A stretch of DNA of 64,000 nucleotides. Origin: Camelus dromedarius. Its lineage: Eukaryota. Position numbers and translations under genes: made by a program. Position 1 is the stretch's first letter. Every line of letters starts with the position of its first letter. The stretch is from the NCBI RefSeq assembly GCF_036321535.1, contig NC_087449.1, forward strand, positions 38,812,001-38,876,000, in the 5' to 3' direction. Positions 1 through 63,865 of the stretch are shown in pieces. The notes beneath the pieces were generated by a model. The model had not been told where the DNA came from. It worked only from the letters and a program-made list of their open reading frames with translations, and made no database searches.

Positions 1-997
1 TCAATGATTTCAGCTGTGAATTGAGAAGATTAGAGCCTGTCTTGTAAGGTGTGAGTTTTTCCTTTCAGAACTTTAAATGAAATATGTAATAAATGACTTG
101 GCATCTCATAGGTGGTCTCTCTTTGTGTACTTTATAAGTTGTTAGCTATGCTGAAAGTCTGCTGATATTGCATGCTTAAGAAATAACCCTAAAACACTGA
201 ACGGTGTTGTGGTGTGGCAGCAACTGAAGAATTCCAGCCAGTTGGAGCTGGTCCACCGCAGGAATGGTCAATCCCGGGGCACTGACCACATCCAGTCTTG
301 GGGACAAGCCCCAGTATTTGCAGGGCAGCCCACCCTGTGTGGCACCACACACTACTCAGCCCTCTGACTTCAACATCCTTTCACCACTCCCCATCACTGA
401 CAAAATAAAAGCCAAGCCCTTTCCAGGCCTAACTCAATCTAGCTCCACCATCACCCCAGTTCTCTGGGGGACAGCGACCTGCCGGACTCACACCCTCATT
501 CAGACACACCACACTCCACTCCAAACAGGGTAAATTACTTTGGGTGTTCCCCTCCCATAGTTTCACATAGGACATTCCATCTGCTCAGAACACGTTTCCG
601 CCTCCCCTTGACCGAACCATCCTTCCAGATAAACTGGATGACATCTCCTCCAGGAGGAGTGGTGATGTGCCTCCTACATAGTCCCAAGGTCCCTGAGTGT
701 CTGTGCCCGACCGTTTCCGCTTCTGTCCCTAGAATGGGGGGCGAGGGGGAGGCGTCCCTGTGGGTATGAAATGATAGGACAGAACCCCAGCGACTGGGAC
801 CAACACTTAACCCCGGGTAAGGGACTCGGCACTCGGCATCAGCGGGAAGCTCCCTTACCTCTCCGGGCAAACCGGGGGCCGTTTCCTGGCGGACGCGCAG
901 AGGAGAGAATTGCGGTACAGGGGGTCCTCACGGCGCCACCGCCCCGCCCACCCGAGCCGCGTCGCTGGTGTCACCTACTGGCCCAGAGTCGTCTGTG

Positions 998-1023
998 ATT
1001 TACATACCCATGGTGCACCACGG
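998..1023 (+). promoter_or_regulatory. snRNA distal sequence element (octamer + SPH/ZNF143 site)
   Basis: ATTTACAT (998-1005, one mismatch to ATTTGCAT) abuts TACCCATGGTGCACCACGG (1005-1023, SPH-like) about 214-190 nt upstream of the U5 start. GC box CCGCCCCGCCC near 940-950. Confidence 0.75.
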
Positions 1024-1151
1024 AAGACAGTTTCACAGTGCTTGAGTTCTAGCCCCACGGGGGTCTATCCACTGATGGAGGGCAGAGTACCTGTCAGAAA
1101 TATATGGGCTGTGTAAATTCCAGCAGGGAGTGCAAACCGCGCAGGAGCTGA

Positions 1152-1171
1152 GCAACCATAACTGTGCTAAG
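1152..1171 (+). promoter_or_regulatory. snRNA proximal sequence element (PSE)
   Basis: GCAACCATAACTGTGCTAAG at -60..-41 of U5 resembles the PSE core ACCNTAACTGT. No TATA box downstream, consistent with a Pol II snRNA promoter. Confidence 0.65.
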
Positions 1172-1211
1172 CGTTACATCACTCTGGGAGGGTCCAAGCG
1201 AAAGCAAGCGA

Positions 1212-1332
1212 ATACTCTGGTTTCTCTTCAGAACGTACAAATCTTTCGCCTTTTACTAAAGATTTCCGTGGAGAGAAACAATTACGAGATTTTAACCAAT
1301 TTTTTGAAGCCTCGGTTATTTTTTCGGGGCTA
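1212..1332 (+). ncRNA. RNU5: U5 spliceosomal snRNA (variant, U5D/E/F-like)
   Basis: Starts ATACTCTGGTTTCTCTTCA. Stem Ic AATCTTT/AAAGATT encloses invariant loop 1 GCCTTTTAC (1248-1256). Sm site AATTTTTTGA at 1298-1307. 3' stem-loop AGCCTCGG (1308-1315)/TCGGGGCT (1324-1331). Confidence 0.95.
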
Positions 1333-1340
1333 TTTTTGAA

Positions 1341-1353
1341 GTTAAAGTGTAGA
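1341..1353 (+). terminator. snRNA 3' box (Integrator processing signal)
   Basis: GTTAAAGTGTAGA starts 9 nt after the U5 3' end; partial match to GTTTN(1-4)AANARNAGA. Confidence 0.5.
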
Positions 1354-2474
1354 AAGTGCTTTTCCCGTTACTTTTATATTTTTTTGTAGTTACCTAGGAG
1401 ACTTAGGAATTCTGGGGACAGAAAGAGTGGTCAGTTTGGGGTTTAAGTAAGTCCGTTCTCCTGACTATCACGCCCACGTTGCTAAACGTGGGTTTTCTCC
1501 TTTTTCTTTATGTTCTTTTTTGCAGGACATGGAGAGAAACGAGCAAAAAGCGAAAGGCTTGCTGAGGTAGTCAGGTGTGACTTCTCTCTGATCGTCCCTG
1601 CTTAACACCGGTTTTCCATGCTGGAAATACAAGGTTCCTTCCCTCAAGGAGCTTAACTTGGTGGAGCCCTAAAAAATGCACAATCTCAGGGAGAAGTGCC
1701 CTGCAGAAAGAGCATAATGAAAAGGACAGGGGTAGCTACTGAACCGTCTTGTCCCTGGGTCTTAAATCTGCATCCTTTCCGTGGGAGAGCTCATCTAGTT
1801 CAGTGGTGACCTCCAAATTCACAGCTATCAGGAGGTCCCACTGACTCCCGTATTCAAAGCATATGCTTCATCCATTCACATTTTACCTTCTCCACTGCTC
1901 CTATGTTGGTCCAAGAGCTCTCCCTGGATTCTTGCAATAGCCCCTCCCTAACTGGTCTCCCTAGACCATCCTCCCCCTTTGTCTCAATCCTCCACACAAA
2001 GGCCAAATAATTTTTAAAAATGTAAATCATATCATACACACCACTTTCCTACACAAACGCCTCCAGTTGCCTTTCCCCAGGACATGGCTCATGCCCCTCC
2101 TCCTTCAGGTGTCTAGTCCACTGTTGTCAGAGGTCTACACTCACCACTCTGTGAAACAGTCCCACTGCCACCACTCTGTTTATCTGTTTAACATGCTTTA
2201 CTTTTTTTCAGCGCACAAACCACTCCCTGTGTTTCCTACATGCAGTATTTAATCTGTCCCACTACATTTCTAAGCACTTTACAAAATTAACTTAATCTCC
2301 CTAAGAACTCTACAAAATACATTCTATTATTATCTCCATTTTATAAATAAGGAAACTCAGACATAGAAAGTTAAATAGCCCTACTCAAGTCACAAAGCCA
2401 GAAAGTGGTGGAGCTGAGATTCAAACCCAGGCAGACTGGCTCCAGAAGAGACATACTCTTAATCACTGTGCTAT

Positions 2475-4618: not shown

Positions 4619-5077
4619 GTCTCTTAAAAACTAGAAACCACGGGAGGCAGACATGAAGAAGAGGAATAAAGCAAGGATGAACTCTCGCTTTCTGGCTTGG
4701 GCACCCAAGGAGATGAGAAACACGATGGGGACAGAACTGGGGAGAGATGAAGAGGGGGTCAATTCTGGACTGAGTCTGAGGTGTCTGTGAGGCATTTAGA
4801 GAGAGAGAGATCTCCAAAAGGCAGGTCTGGAATTAAAGAGCGGACGAGCAGAAAAGTTATGTGGGTGTTACGAGAGTAAACCGGGCGGGCGAGAGTGCCT
4901 AGGGACCCGCTGTAGAGCCAGAGCACCGCGTGAAAGAAGCCGTTTGGGGGTTTTGCGCGAGCCTGCAGGACAAGACCCAATACAACACCACGCCACTCTG
5001 GCCCGCCCTCCCCCGGAGCCTCACCCACAGCGCCTGCGCGTGGCCCACAGCCGTCCCTCCAGCGACCCGCTCGCCGG

Positions 5078-11146: not shown

Positions 11147-11806
11147 ATGGCTGGCAGGCCTGTGCCTCCCGGAAGCCAGGAGGAAGAGACTGCCAAAGAC
11201 CCTGGGCTGAAACTAGCACCGGCGCGGCCTCTAGGCCGCCTGCCCAGCATTGATGAGACCCGACCAGCCGGCCCCGGCCCAGCCTCCCGCCGTGGCTCTG
11301 TGCTAGGTCCAGCCTCGTCCTTTTCACGCCGCAACTCGCTGGCCGGACCAGGCGTGGGTCCTGGGGGTCGGCGCCCATCCCGGGGCCCAACGCCTCTTCT
11401 AGGCTCACGAGTCAGCTTCTCGGGCTTGCCCCTGGTGCCTGCCCGCCGGGCAGTGCCCTCGTACCTCACGGAGCCTGCGCCGGGGGAGCACTGGCAGGCC
11501 GCGCGCACTCAGCGGGCCCTGGAGGCGGCGCTGGCAGAGGGGCTGCGCGATGCGTGCTACGTGGGCGCCGAGGCGGGGCGGCTGGCGCGGGAGCTGTGTG
11601 AGCTAGTGCGCGTGCGCATGCGCGAGCTGAGCCCGCCACGCTACAAGTTGGTGTGCAGCGTGGTGGTGGGGCCGCGCGCTGGCCAGGGCGTGCGTGTGGT
11701 CAGCCGCGCGCTTTGGGACGCGGAGCACGATGGACTGGCCTCGGCAGTCGTCACCAACGCCTCGCTCTTTGCCGTGGCCACGGTCCACGGGCTCTACTGT
11801 GAGTGA
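11147..11806 (+). CDS. DYNLT4: Dynein light chain Tctex-type 4 (TCTEX1D4), 219 aa, single coding exon
   Basis: ORF MAGRPVPPGSQEEE...FAVATVHGLYCE* with a C-terminal Tctex-1 domain (PRYKLVCSVVVG...LWD...DGLAS) and PP1-binding RVSF motif. Acceptor cgcag just upstream of the ATG implies a non-coding first exon. Confidence 0.95.
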   Translation: MAGRPVPPGSQEEETAKDPGLKLAPARPLGRLPSIDETRPAGPGPASRRGSVLGPASSFSRRNSLAGPGVGPGGRRPSRGPTPLLGSRVSFSGLPLVPARRAVPSYLTEPAPGEHWQAARTQRALEAALAEGLRDACYVGAEAGRLARELCELVRVRMRELSPPRYKLVCSVVVGPRAGQGVRVVSRALWDAEHDGLASAVVTNASLFAVATVHGLYCE

Positions 11807-17106: not shown

Positions 17107-18454
17107 ACAACTAGATGGACCAGCGTTCTAGCTGGAAAGGAAGGGGCAGGGGCGGCGCTCGCTTTTGCCTGGGCACATCACTACCAAACCCCTTTAAGTG
17201 CGCGGGACTTAGCGCTCATCCCACGCCTGAGGGCTCTGGCCAGTGCTGCCCCCTTTAGGGCCTGGGAGGAATTGCACACTCTTGAGCCGGACTTGGGGAA
17301 CGAGGAAGACCAGGGCTCTCATGCTGAGTTTCGGGGCGTTAGAGGCATTTGCCATGAGCCAGGTCACATCTTCCGCTACCCACTTCCACAACTTTCAGGG
17401 GTAGATCTCAGGTTCTGGCGGAGTGCCTATTCCCTTTTCCTGAAAATATCCATTGCCCTGAGTCTGCAGCCAGAGGCCAGAAAGTGAAGAATTAGAATTC
17501 TATTTTCTCAAACCTAGCAATGGACAATTGAAGAGGTGGTCCCTGGGCCATCTGAACCCCTAGACCTCTGGTCCATGCCTACCCTTCCCAGGGCCAGAGA
17601 CAGAGAGAGGTGGGGTTTTAACCCCTCTGGATCCCAGGGTCACAGGCTTCCTCCTGGTCTTGGCCTTCTCACCTCTTTGTGCTCACTCTGTACCATCTAG
17701 TCAAATTATTAAGCTCTTCAGTCCTCAAAGATTTGAGAGCACTTGGTAAACGCCAAGCACTGTCTGTGTAAGACTGGTCAAATTGCAGCCTTTATTTAGT
17801 TTACATTCTGCTTGATGGAAACAAGGCAATAGGCAAGGATATAAACAAGGTAATTGAAGGCTGTGAAAAGGGCTAGAAGGAAGTAAATAGAAAAGTAACC
17901 AAAGAGCTTACTTTAAAAAGAGTAGCCAGGAAAGTCAACAAATAATACAATTTATTGAGTACCCAATTCCTGTCAGTTTTATGTCCTAAACATCTCTGAG
18001 ATCTATCCACTTCGCTCCATCTTCCCTGAGCACTCTAATCTAGGTCACAATCTGTCAGGTTGGGATTATTGCTACAGCACCTTCCTGGTCTCCTTGCCCT
18101 TAGTCTCAACTTCATTTCATTCTTGTGCCATATGACCATCCCACCCCATGCCTCATCAGGCCCAGTCTCCAACTTTGCCCTCCAAGGGAGAACAAAACCC
18201 GCCTGAGATGTGGAGAAATACTAGTAGCTCTGATGAGCAAGGGGAGGTGGGGGATGGGCAGGAAGGCCTTACATGCCATACTTAGGACTTTGGTCTTTAT
18301 CCTGCAGGTCAACAGTTTTCCAGAGGGAACATGGTAGAGGTAAGGCCAGAAAAAACATATCCACAGGGGAAATGGGACTGAGGCGTGTATAGTTTGATAA
18401 GGCATGTTTGATACTGTCATTTTATATTTGTAAAATAAAGCAAAATGTCTTTAT

Positions 18455-18790
18455 ATGAGTTTGCTAGGGTTGTCATAACACAATACTACAGATTAGGTGG
18501 CTTAAACATCAGAAATTAATTTTCTCACAATTTTGGAAGCTGGAAAGTCAAGATCAAGGTATTGACAAGGTTGCTTTCTTCCAAGGCCTCTCTCGTAGTT
18601 TGTAGATGGAGGTCTTTTCCCTCTGAGTTCACATGATCTTTTCCCCAGTGTGTCCTAATCACTTCTTCCCTTAAAGACATTAGTCAGATCAGATTAGGGC
18701 CTACCTCAGGCCCTCATCTTAATTACCTCTTTAAAGGTTCTATCTCCAAATATAGTCACATTCTAAGGTACTGGGGGTTAGGACTTTGTA
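18455..18790 (+). mobile_element. MaLR LTR (MLT1-like)
   Basis: TGAGTTTGCTAGGGTTGTCATAACACAATACTACAGATTAGGTGGCTTAAA...TCTCACAATTTTGGAAGCTGGAAAGTCAAGATCAAGG is typical MLT1 sequence. Confidence 0.65.
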
Positions 18791-20211: not shown

Positions 20212-21984
20212 ACTGGTCATTTATCTTATGGACTGCTTACAGTAACCTTATGATGTGGATGTGATTATCCCATTTCACAGATGGGGAAACGGAGGCTCTT
20301 GGAGCTAAGCCTCTTGCCCAAAGTCATATGGCTACCAAGGGGCAGAGCCAAGATCTGAACCCAAGATGTCTGACTCTGCTATTAATTACTGCCTGACTTT
20401 TCTGGGGGTCGCTAGTTCTCTGTCCATGCATTTGTCCTCCTACACTGCTCTGTGTCTTCCTGTCTCTCTCACTAGTGCCCTTTCTTCTCCCTCCAGGACT
20501 CTCACAGCCTCTGCTCTAGCTGAGGTTTTTCTGAGCTCTCTGGGTCTCTATCCAGGATGCCAACAGGCCCCTGCTACAAGTTGAGCACATATCCCACACT
20601 CCTTGTCCCCTTGGCAGCTCAGAATCAGAATCTCTAGACAATGTCAGGTCACAGGCATCAGGGGAGTCTTTCAAGAATGAGAGATGCCAAATAAGGTTAG
20701 GACTCAGGAGGGCCCTATTGGATTCAGCAGTAAGGAGATCTCAGGTGTCCTTGGTGGGGACAGAGGAGGAAGTACAAGAGCTGAACCAGAGAGAATAGCG
20801 ATGCTAATAACTACAGTAGCATTTCATGCTTACAGAGCACTTTATAAATATTAATTCACTTAATATTCACCACTAACTCTGTGAGATAGGTATTATCATT
20901 CTGTTTCCCCATGGGGAAATTAAGGACAGAGTGGTTAAACAGTTTGTTCAAGGTCATGAAGGTAGTTTACAGTGGTGTCTGGATTTTAAAATCTAGGCAG
21001 TCTGGCTCCAGACTCCATGCTATAAACAGCCAAGCCATATATCCAGCTCTCAGCTGTGAGAAGGGGAGAGGGCATTGGTGGTTAGGATCAGAACAGAGAG
21101 AGAGGCAAGAGCTAGAGGAGGATAAAGAAGGGTGGGGAAAATGATTTACAGGTGGAGTGGTTCCCTCTCCTGGACCATAAACCAAAGGGACTTGTCAGCA
21201 TCTGGGAAGGGAGATAAAATGACTCAGGAAGGAGGGGCTGGGTGGGGCCTGGGGACTGCTCCCTCCTGGTGCAAGGCTTCAGGTCCTGTACCTTTACCCA
21301 TGGCTCTGTGGGAAACTCACAGCCCAGGGATCCAGAGAGTTGGTAACAGGCAGATGTGAGAGGACCATAGATGGGGATGGGGGCTGAGGACTGAAGTGTG
21401 GCCAGCTGGGAGCTCAGGGAGCAGCGTCAGAGAGAAGCTCCCAGGACCTCGGGGCCTGAGCTCCTCCAGAACCAGGGTCTGGCTTTCCAGGTACAAGAAA
21501 CTCTTTAAGTTGTAAGCAGCCCAGAATGCTCTAGGTAAGCCACAGATCAGAGCCTGGGAAGAGGTTGCATGGCCATATGGGCTGAGGCACAGAGCTGGTA
21601 TCTTGCCCTCCCCAGGTCAGGTCCTGGGTCTTCCTGACCTCAGGACACACCCTCAGAGTCCTGTTCTTTCCTCATATTGACATCTCACCTGGGCCCTGGA
21701 AAGAGAACATAATTTGTCAGACATGAGTTGGTTTCGAGATCTTGCTCATCTGGGGAGTTTCTTACAAAAAGTGGGGAGGGGGACCTGGTGTCTTTCAGGT
21801 TAAAAGAGACAAAAAATACAAATAAAGAAAAGAAAGAAAGAGAAAAGGAGAGAAAAGCCTGCCTGTTTCAAGTCCTCTCTAGCTTTATTGAAATGAATCA
21901 GATGCAGTCTGTTCCCAAGGGTCTCATGGGCTGCAGGGAGATCTCTTTGTAAACAGATCATAGGCCAGTATGATTAACTGCTGC

Positions 21985-30366: not shown

Positions 30367-32977
<2,611 letters not shown>

Positions 32978-36091: not shown

Positions 36092-52930
<16,839 letters not shown>

Positions 52931-56474: not shown

Positions 56475-56604
56475 NNNNNNNNNNNNNNNNNNNNNNNNNN
56501 NNNNNNNNNNNNNNNNNNNNNNNNNNNNNNNNNNNNNNNNNNNNNNNNNNNNNNNNNNNNNNNNNNNNNNNNNNNNNNNNNNNNNNNNNNNNNNNNNNNN
56601 NNNN
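56475..56604. other. Assembly gap (130 N)
   Basis: Run of N. Confidence 1.
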
Positions 56605-58699: not shown

Positions 58700-60700
58700 A
58701 GAATTTTTAAAAGTTAGTTGTTTAAAAATCTTAATAAGCTAGACAAACCTGGTGAGAGTGATTTTTTAAATATGCAAATGAAAAAGATACAGAATGAAAA
58801 GGGGAAGTAGGAAATAAATACAGACAAAACATGGGTAAAAAATGTGTTCAAAATTTAATGGACAACTTTACATCAACAAGTTTAAAAGCTTAGATAAAAT
58901 AGATAAAGTCTAAAAAGGTAAAATATCCAAACTGGCACAAGGAAAAAAAAAAAACTTGAATAGACCAATAGGCAATAAAGAAATTGAAATTATAAGAAAT
59001 CTTCCATCTCCAAAGCTCCAAGCTGAAGTGGTTATTGGTAAGTTTTGCAAAGCTTTCCAGAAGTAATTAACTCCTATCTTATACCAGTAGTTTCAGCCAT
59101 TTGGGAGAACATAAAATTAGATGTATAGGTGACACCATATACCAGAATAAACTTCAAACCGACCAGGGATCTCAAATGTAAGAAAATGAAACTACAGGAA
59201 GTAGTAGTAGGAAACATGAGTGAGTTTTTCCTAATAATACGCATTGAAGAAAACCTTTTGAACTATGACTCAAAATCCAGAAGAAATAGAAGATTTATGA
59301 TTTTGACTCCATTAAAAAAAACTTTTTGCTTGGCAAGATGAAAAACTGGGAGAAAATATTAGCAACTTACATGGCAGATAAAGAGCTCTTTAAAACTGAA
59401 GGAAACTTTTTCTTTCTCTGATGCATGGTTGAAAGGTGGCAATGCACGTTTCCAGAGGAAATTGAGGGGGTCGGGAAAGAGCAAAAACCCAGCAGAAAAG
59501 TGGACAAAAGATGTAAACAGAAAAATGCACACACAAAGGATACAAAAATGGCCCTTAAACATATGAAAAAATACTCTACTTACAAAATAAAAAAGAGAAA
59601 CGCAAGTTACAACTACACTGAAACACTATTTTTCAACATTTTTTGCTCAGGGGGCAGTAATTACCTCCTACCTAGGTTTATTTACTTACTCATTCATTTT
59701 AAGGGAGGCACTGGGGATTGAACCCAGGACCTCATGCATGCTAAGCACGTGCTCCACCACTGAGCTATATCCTCCCTGCTGTTTTTCACCATTTAGATGG
59801 GTAGAAATTTTAAAACTTGACAAAATCCTGTTGGCAAAGCTGTGGAGGACACCCTCATAGGTCACACATGTTGTGTAAAACCTGTGGAATTTGGCAATAT
59901 TTAACAAAACTGCATATGAATTTACTCTTTGACCCAATAATCCACCCAAAGTACATACTCACAAATATGAAAAAAAAAATGCCCAAAACTACTAGTGCAG
60001 TATTATCTGTTATAGCAAAGTTCTGTAAACAACTTAAATTCCCACCTATAGGGACTGACTAGATCAATACAATGGAGAACTATGCAGCCACAAAAGAATG
60101 AGGAAGATCTCTATAAACTGATATTGTGCTATTTCCAGAATATATTGTTAAGTGAAATAAGTAAAGTGTATGTTACTTTTGTTGAGGGAAATAAAATATA
60201 TGCTGCTGCTGCTGATTTTTTTTGGCAAAAAGAAACACAGAAAGATTAAACCAGAAACTAATGAGCACAGGGTCGGGTCAGGGGATGGGGTGCAGAGGAA
60301 AAGGACAAAAGTAAGACTTCTCTGAGTTTATGTATTTTTATAGTTTTGATTTTTGAATCTCATAAATCTTTTACATGATTTAAAAGGTAAAACCAAATAA
60401 AAATATATCATGGCTAAAATAGGGCTTCACTCAGGAATGTAAAAATGATTAACACACAAAAATCTAGCAATTATAATTCACCATATTGGTGGGCTAAAGG
60501 GAAAAAATAATATGATTATCTCAATAGAATCAGAAAAGCACTTGATAGAAAGTTCAGCCCCTGTTTTTGATAAAAACTCAGGAAACTGGTGATAGAAGAG
60601 AACTTCCTTAGCATAATACAGGCTACATGCCAAAAACTTACAGCAAACATCGTACTTAAAGACACATACTCTTTAAGATCAGAGAAAAGGATTGCCACTG
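58700..60700 (+). mobile_element. Old fragmented LINE-1 (ORF2/3' UTR remnants) interrupted by a SINE
   Basis: A-rich L1-like text, e.g. ACTTGAATAGACCAATA, GATTATCTCAATAGAATCAGAAAAGCACTTGAT, GGAATAGAAGAG-like GTGATAGAAGAGAACTTCCTTAGCATAATA. Confidence 0.55.
59650..59776 (-). mobile_element. tRNA-Ala-derived SINE
   Basis: Plus strand GGGGATTGAACCCAGGACCTCATGCATGCTAAGCACGTGCTCCACCACTGAGCTATATCCTCCC. Confidence 0.85.
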
Positions 60701-62676: not shown

Positions 62677-62810
62677 AAAAAAATTTTTGGGGGGGGGTGG
62701 GGAGGTAATTAGGTTTATTTATTTATTTATTTAAATGAAAATACTCGGGATTGAACCCAGGACCTCATGCATGCTAAGTATGCACTCTACCACTGAGCCA
62801 TACCCTCCCC
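62677..62810 (-). mobile_element. tRNA-Ala-derived SINE with 12-bp TSD
   Basis: TSD CCATATACTCTT (62665-62676 and 62811-62822). Confidence 0.87.
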
Positions 62811-63711: not shown

Positions 63712-63865
63712 AGGGGAAGAGAGTATAGCTCAGTGGTAGAACACGTGCTTAGCATGCACAGGGTCCTGGGTTCAATCCTCAGTACCTCCATTAAAAAAAA
63801 AATAGATAAGTAAACCTAATTATACCCCCTCCCCAGCAAAAAAAAAAAAAAAAAAGACAAAACCA
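63712..63865 (+). mobile_element. tRNA-Ala-derived SINE with long poly(A)
   Basis: GAGTATAGCTCAGTGGTAGAACACGTGCTTAGCATGCACAGGGTCCTGGGTTCAATCCTCAGTACCTCCA, tail AAACCTAATTATACCCCC, A-run; possible TSD AAAAACACAT. Confidence 0.87.

Follow-up and report, generated by a model that had tools for sequence, protein, structure and literature searches.

The closest described system is human RNU5E-6P, a U5 small nuclear RNA (snRNA) locus that is nested in the PTCH2 locus and is clearly expressed (10.1101/477869). Its RNA is as abundant in Sm immunoprecipitates as the snRNAs of the minor spliceosome and is found in U5 small nuclear ribonucleoproteins (snRNPs) and spliceosomes at the 1-4% level, and Mabin et al. 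suggest that it prefers the minor spliceosome (PMC8457000). RNU5E-6P is also among the four RNU pseudogenes that carry active chromatin marks in retina (PMC11741465) and is ranked as a high-confidence 'gene-like' pseudogene with variant depletion; it falls among the genes when hypermutation features are used to split human snRNA genes from pseudogenes (area under the curve 0.999), and only candidate biallelic variants have been reported for disease (PMC13640761). More generally, concerted evolution has been reported for multi-copy snRNA genes, and orthologous groups of snRNA genes are usually detectable only within a genus (PMC4291461). Here we describe a U5 gene of the dromedary, Camelus dromedarius, that lies between BTBD19 and PTCH2, whose 3' ends face each other, in a stretch of 64,000 nt (assembly GCF_036321535.1, contig NC_087449.1, positions 38,812,001 to 38,876,000 of the forward strand), which was analysed as a whole and is called the window below. 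From synteny and the published human location, the camel gene is likely the orthologue of RNU5E-6P.

The gene, at window positions 1212-1331 on the forward strand, is real and very probably functional. We hold with considerable confidence that it is a working camelid U5 gene transcribed by RNA polymerase II (Pol II), and the positional orthologue of the U5 gene found between BTBD19 and PTCH2 in placental mammals, human RNU5E-6P included. A first-pass annotation, made from the letters of the window, had pointed to a human U5 at the equivalent BTBD19/PTCH2 position, which agrees with the synteny described below and with the placement of RNU5E-6P in the PTCH2 locus (10.1101/477869). It had also proposed that the human copy is mislabelled, expressed and able to enter spliceosomes; the literature supports this (10.1101/477869; PMC8457000; PMC11741465; PMC13640761), and the idea is not new, since a 'pseudogene' that is an expressed U5 variant entering spliceosomes was published for human in 2021 (PMC8457000). 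What is new here is the camelid member, the positional stability of the gene across Laurasiatheria and Xenarthra (Afrotheria and Rodentia carry relics), and a footprint of mutation and selection at the camelid gene.

The camel U5 gene and its promoter

The coding region is intact. It matches the U5 family of Rfam (RF00020) end to end, over model positions 1-117 of 117, at 105.5 bits against a gathering score of 40 (E = 7.7e-18), and no second U5 match occurs elsewhere in the 64-kb window, even with relaxed thresholds. In the Rfam alignment the 11-nt loop I, stems Ib and Ic and the Sm site are canonical and the terminal stem-loop is present, the sole non-standard pair being an A.A at the outermost position of stem Ia. 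The whole RNA folds with a minimum free energy of -30.5 kcal/mol (z = -2.9). Its 3' stem-loop, at 1308-1331, forms 8 bp, two of them G.U pairs, at -11.6 kcal/mol (z = -3.6), compared with -13.5 kcal/mol given for human U5A-1 by Mabin et al. (PMC8457000). The first-pass annotation had read much of this correctly: the invariant loop 1, the Sm site and the perfect stem Ib, the 8-bp 3' stem with two G-U pairs, and a weakened stem Ia ('GAGA instead of GAGT'), which is the A.A pair. Its U5 also stands, with an extent of 120 nt by Rfam and of 121 nt by that annotation.

The coding region and the elements around it are as follows.

939..950 (-): GC-box-like CCGCCC repeats, a possible Sp1 site, 8/9 to GGGGCGGGG; the weakest part
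998..1005 (+), at -214..-207: variant octamer ATTTACAT of the distal sequence element (DSE), 7/8 to ATTTGCAT
1005..1022 (+), at -207..-190: SPH / ZNF143-type element of the DSE, abutting the octamer, 14/17 to YWCCCRNAATGCAYYGCG
1153..1171 (+): proximal sequence element (PSE), with the core ACCATAACTG at 1155-1164 (-57..-48)
1212..1331 (+): U5 snRNA coding region (Rfam U5), with loop I at 1247-1257, the Sm site at 1298-1306 and the 3' stem-loop at 1308-1331
1341..1353 (+): 3' box GTTAAAGTGTAGA, the signal for snRNA 3'-end formation, 10 nt past the gene
1332..1650 (no strand): zone of raised camel-alpaca substitution, 40/318 = 12.6% against a background of 3.0% (p about 1e-13)

The promoter architecture is that of a class II snRNA gene, for which a PSE near -55, no TATA box, a DSE near -220 and a 3' box within 9-19 nt downstream of the gene are expected. 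No TATA box was found near -30 (-35..-20 checked), which makes this the Pol II type of snRNA promoter. The individual elements are scarce in the window, counting both strands in each case: there are only four SPH matches of at least 14/17 in the 64 kb, only five matches to the PSE core ACCNTNASTG, which fits 8/8 at 1155-1164, and six matches (in 128 kb) to the relaxed 3' box pattern that we adapted from GTTTN0-3AAARNNAGA. A full-length 19-nt PSE consensus was tried and dropped as evidence, since its best upstream match (10/16) fell on an unrelated site and 567 matches as good occur window-wide. The 3' half of the PSE does not fit this consensus and the 5' core alone counts. The upstream DNA is CpG-rich over 700-1100 (GC 0.62, CpG observed/expected 0.73).

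The first-pass annotation had named most of these parts. The octamer variant and the SPH element that it placed at -214..-190 are at those places, and the 3'-box-like element that it described is present. Its PSE at -60..-41 is upheld in the core and not in the 3' half, and its GC box does lie in CpG-rich DNA, although the box itself matches at only 8 of 9 positions and is poorly conserved across species. It had further argued from the lack of a poly(A) tail or target-site duplication that the gene is not a retrocopy. There is indeed no A-run within 40 nt of the gene, direct repeats flanking it do not exceed 6 nt, and it has a full promoter; the gene is therefore not a retrocopy.

Two further SPH/ZNF143-like matches in the window, both at 15/17, lie at 5072 (-) and 53184 (-). 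The one at 5072 is inside a CpG island over the last BTBD19 exon or exons (GC about 0.7, CpG observed/expected 0.78).

A gene of this structure would be expected to work by steps that follow established vertebrate snRNA gene biology. Oct-1 and ZNF143 on the distal element, at about -210, would stabilise SNAPc on the PSE at about -55, and Pol II would start at the A at position 1212. Integrator would cleave at the 3' box, and the resulting RNA of about 120 nt would be capped, would receive its Sm ring at 1298-1306 and would assemble into the U5 snRNP, in which the canonical loop I would hold the exons during splicing. We infer from the structure of the locus that the camel gene is transcribed and that its RNA is processed and assembled in this way.

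The same locus in other mammals

To place the camel gene we sampled the BTBD19-PTCH2 interval in eight other mammals of Laurasiatheria, Xenarthra, Afrotheria and Rodentia, using first DYNLT4 and then BTBD19 proteins as anchors, and the orthologous U5 was located by local scripts with probes taken from window positions up to 1233 and from 1284 onwards. Synteny is maintained: the gene order PLK3, DYNLT4, BTBD19 and a convergent Patched-family gene (PTCH2) holds in alpaca, warthog and goat, and the gene calls in the murid Apodemus are PLK3, BTBD19 and Patched. One intact or largely intact U5 sits in the interval in alpaca, warthog, goat, black rhino, a vespertilionid bat and the anteater Tamandua, and it is on the PTCH2 strand in the three species in which PTCH2 was called (alpaca, warthog and goat).

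The remaining two species carry relics. In manatee (L126:22284, -) the DSE and PSE are intact and the gene body differs at 48 of 120 positions, with stem Ib and loop I broken. In Apodemus (L128 ~18430-18650, -) there are left an octamer, half of an SPH site and a degraded U5 that is interrupted by a (CA)n insertion and lacks loop I and the Sm site.

The regulatory elements are conserved in DNA that otherwise aligns poorly between species around the DSE and PSE. The 27-nt block that includes octamer and SPH element, compared across eight species, is invariant except for one SPH position that is degenerate (N) in the consensus and a G>A change in the camelid octamer. This change is camelid-specific: warthog, goat, rhino, bat, Tamandua and manatee all have a perfect ATTTGCAT as the orthologous octamer. 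All seven species whose gene is intact or largely intact retain the PSE core, and its substitutions fall at degenerate positions of the consensus. The 3' box is identical in alpaca, near-identical in bat and recognisable in goat, warthog and rhino. The GC box is poorly conserved in the other mammals, and we rejected it as a conserved element on that ground.

Conservation extends to the RNA itself. In the seven intact or largely intact copies the 5' domain, about the first two-thirds of the molecule, hardly varies, and its differences lie in the internal loop. Loop I shows no difference in six of the seven species; in rhino it is partly masked by N, as the 5' domain there carries a run of ten Ns (L125 ~21287-21296, -) that is either masked sequence or a gap. 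The 3' stem covaries: across the six Laurasiatherians pairing is kept in 46/46 cells, where two pairs carry substitutions on both sides (in rhino, for example, G-C has become A-U) and two on a single side. In a control for this pairing only 16 of 500 shuffles did as well, while slid controls were 35-57% paired. All of the orthologous 3' stem-loops are stable (-8.1 to -13.7 kcal/mol). The first-pass annotation had called for a cross-mammal alignment and a covariation check of the 3' stem. Both came out in favour of its conserved U5 variant, with a U5 at the same spot in six further species, conserved DSE and PSE, and two compensatory pairs in a fully paired stem.

Against this background the camelids have several novelties, namely the octamer variant and, in the 3' stem, two G.U pairs and a loop that is 3 nt longer. 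In camelid stem Ib an A-U replaces a G.U pair, so that the stem is perfectly Watson-Crick, a state derived with respect to the other mammals sampled. The A.A of stem Ia is specific to the camel lineage, and rhino has independently acquired the same base.

A pattern scan of metagenomes for the 3' stem gave at least 120 matches, essentially all of them chance, with none mammalian among the matches listed. In two of the environmental contigs (L011:1248-1272, -, and L042:1196-1220, -) a GAAGCCTCGG...CCGGGGCT stem comes after a U5-like Sm site; judged by these features, they are probably U5 genes of small eukaryotes.

Substitution footprint and competing explanations

Camel and alpaca differ at 98 of 3279 positions (3.0%) over 3.3 kb of regional background. 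Immediately past the gene this rate rises sharply, to 16.7% over the ~170 nt downstream of U5 at 1332-1500 (p = 2e-13), and it stays raised to 1650, as listed above. Most of the substitutions over window positions 1201-1650 are transitions (37/53). We had considered the immediate flanks of the gene as a source of a 'neutral' rate and dropped them, because they are themselves hypermutated. Within the gene, seven of the nine differences fall among the 38 unconstrained positions and only two among the 82 that are paired or belong to loop I or the Sm site (Fisher p = 0.004); 2/82 is also below the local rate of 16.7% (p = 5e-5). The downstream peak may be a footprint of transcription-associated mutation, which would point to transcription in the germline, and a mutation peak together with spared structural positions fits germline transcription combined with purifying selection, as would be expected of a selected snRNA gene in active transcription.

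An index of sequencing runs was queried with sampled words of the locus. For positions 700-2200, five RNA runs, labelled as reproductive-system transcriptomes, contain 30-44% of the sampled words. This share exceeds what the gene alone could supply, which suggests that a longer transcript overlaps 700-2200, possibly as an extended PTCH2 3' region. An exon-like piece lies at about 1524-1567 (+), with a polypyrimidine tract and CAG before it and GTAGT after it.

Several observations weigh against a functional camel gene. Its overall camel-alpaca divergence, at 7.5%, is above the regional background. None of the runs found in the index for the gene's 11 sampled words is on record as RNA, and the best of them, of unknown kind, has 0.73 of the words. 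The changes derived in the camel lineage (the octamer G>A, the A.A in stem Ia and the two G.U pairs of the 3' stem) could weaken the gene. The copy is also dispensable in some lineages, as the relics in manatee and murid attest, and the manatee DSE and PSE standing beside a dead gene mean that promoter conservation alone is no proof that the snRNA is the selected product.

A first competing explanation is a U5 copy that is transcribed but drifting, with an active promoter and an RNA that has become redundant in the camel lineage, on its way to the fate of the manatee and murid copies. Camel has more derived changes than alpaca, including the sole pair-breaking one, the camelid octamer is weakened, the divergence of the gene overall is raised, and loss has occurred independently in two other lineages, in one of which, manatee, the promoter has outlasted the gene. 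Paired, loop I and Sm positions are, however, spared by most of the differences (2/82 against 7/38), the only pair to be broken is terminal and is also A in rhino, and the other stem changes keep or strengthen pairing, leaving a 3' stem-loop that is still stable. We therefore regard drift as improbable, though it is the strongest of the competitors.

Less probable still, and by our estimate very unlikely, is a silent pseudogene that gene conversion has kept looking intact, in which case the upstream block would have another use, such as regulating PTCH2, BTBD19 or a long non-coding RNA through ZNF143/Oct-1. Such an account could draw on the concerted evolution reported for multi-copy snRNA genes (PMC4291461), on the manatee promoter that is conserved without a working gene, and on the RNA runs, which contain words of 700-2200 and are not listed for the gene's own words. 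It leaves unexplained why a PSE and a 3' box, which have no known role outside snRNA-type genes, should both be conserved at the right spacing. Moreover, the lineage-specific 3' stem-loops with their compensatory changes point to descent in place and not to repeated overwriting, the manatee and murid copies have not been rescued, and a substitution peak centred on the gene fits local transcription. That a processed U5 retrocopy landed by chance near promoter-like motifs is next to impossible: although most annotated mammalian snRNA loci are retrocopies (echoed in PMC8457000), this one has neither A-tail nor direct repeats of more than 6 nt, and the occurrence of the same locus and promoter across four placental superorders, relics counted, refutes the idea.

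Returning to the reading of the camel locus as a functional U5 gene, its product most likely performs the usual task of a U5 RNA, the gene being one of a redundant family, and such redundancy would explain the loss of the locus in some lineages. A variant-specific function is pure speculation and finds no support here, because loop I and the 5' domain conform to the consensus of the Rfam family.

A broader claim is that a U5 gene has occupied one chromosomal slot since the placental ancestor, about 100 million years by our own estimate, being intact or largely intact in Laurasiatheria and Xenarthra, functional in human by report, and independently dead in sirenians and murids. We put this forward as a long shot. 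If true, stability of the slot at placental age would run against the rarity with which snRNA orthologues persist beyond a genus (PMC4291461), and there would be room for a conserved specialised role, such as a minor-spliceosome preference or a tissue-restricted one. The stability of the locus in our sample is in any case mildly at odds with the genus-level statement of snRNA orthology in that study (PMC4291461). For annotation, the locus should be named a U5 snRNA gene and not a pseudogene, and the cross-mammal evidence gives evolutionary grounds for a new name for human RNU5E-6P, already a candidate in rare-disease screens (PMC13640761). For snRNA biology, the locus offers a clear case of positional orthology that is stable across placental orders, here in a multi-copy snRNA gene, together with lineage-specific death, and so a natural experiment on the redundancy of U5 variants.

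Genomic setting and comparison with known systems

The neighbours of the camel gene in the window supply the synteny used above. BTBD19 is represented by open reading frames for a BACK-like exon and a BTB exon on the reverse strand at 5.5-7.6 kb. A single exon at 11147-11806 (+) encodes a complete Tctex-1 protein, which its sources name DYNLT4; its best named relative is that of alpaca (96% identity), all others being at or below 85%. Polo-box and kinase exons follow on the reverse strand at 12-16 kb. Four box C/D snoRNAs (two SNORD38, SNORD46 and SNORD55/39) stand in a row at 30593-32734 (-), which we take to be the known intron-hosted set of RPS8 and which served as a synteny marker only. 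At the other end, window positions 1-600 have an AATAAA at 89-94 (+) and 97.5% camel-alpaca identity; this part may be the end of the PTCH2 3' untranslated region, with the coding region beyond the left edge of the window.

Elements resembling tRNA-Ala(AGC), with low tRNA scores, occur at 59702-59776 (-), 62736-62807 (-) and 63719-63790 (+), and also at 47345 and 20138. They end in an A-rich tail of the AAATAAACC type and look like short interspersed elements (SINEs) rather than tRNA genes, presumably the camelid SINEs derived from tRNA-Ala. Taken with the DYNLT4 identities, they mark the window as DNA of a camelid that is not alpaca, most likely Camelus, in agreement with the assembly. Runs of 128 and 130 Ns at 48363-48490 and 56475-56604 are gaps or masked sequence.

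The camel gene shares with canonical U5 genes (human RNU5A-1 and RNU5B-1; RF00020) the 5' stem-loop, loop I, the Sm site and a terminal 3' stem-loop, and with canonical vertebrate U5 genes the class II promoter, that is, a DSE of octamer and SPH element, a PSE, no TATA box and a 3' box. It differs from them in its internal loop, linker and 3' stem-loop, which is where known variants differ (PMC8457000), in the A.A at the outer pair of stem Ia, and in being a single, dispersed and syntenically stable locus. RNU2-2 (formerly RNU2-2P) is likewise a full-length snRNA locus that was labelled a pseudogene and later proved conserved and expressed (10.1101/2024.12.08.627405; PMC12165858), but it belongs to another snRNA family and, unlike RNU5E-6P, has an established disease link. 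The closest counterpart is RNU5E-6P. The two share a neighbourhood, the human gene being nested in the PTCH2 locus and the camel gene following closely after the 3' end of PTCH2, on the same strand as PTCH2 and ahead of BTBD19, and the hypermutation and variant depletion of the human gene are paralleled in camel by the substitution peak and the spared structured positions.

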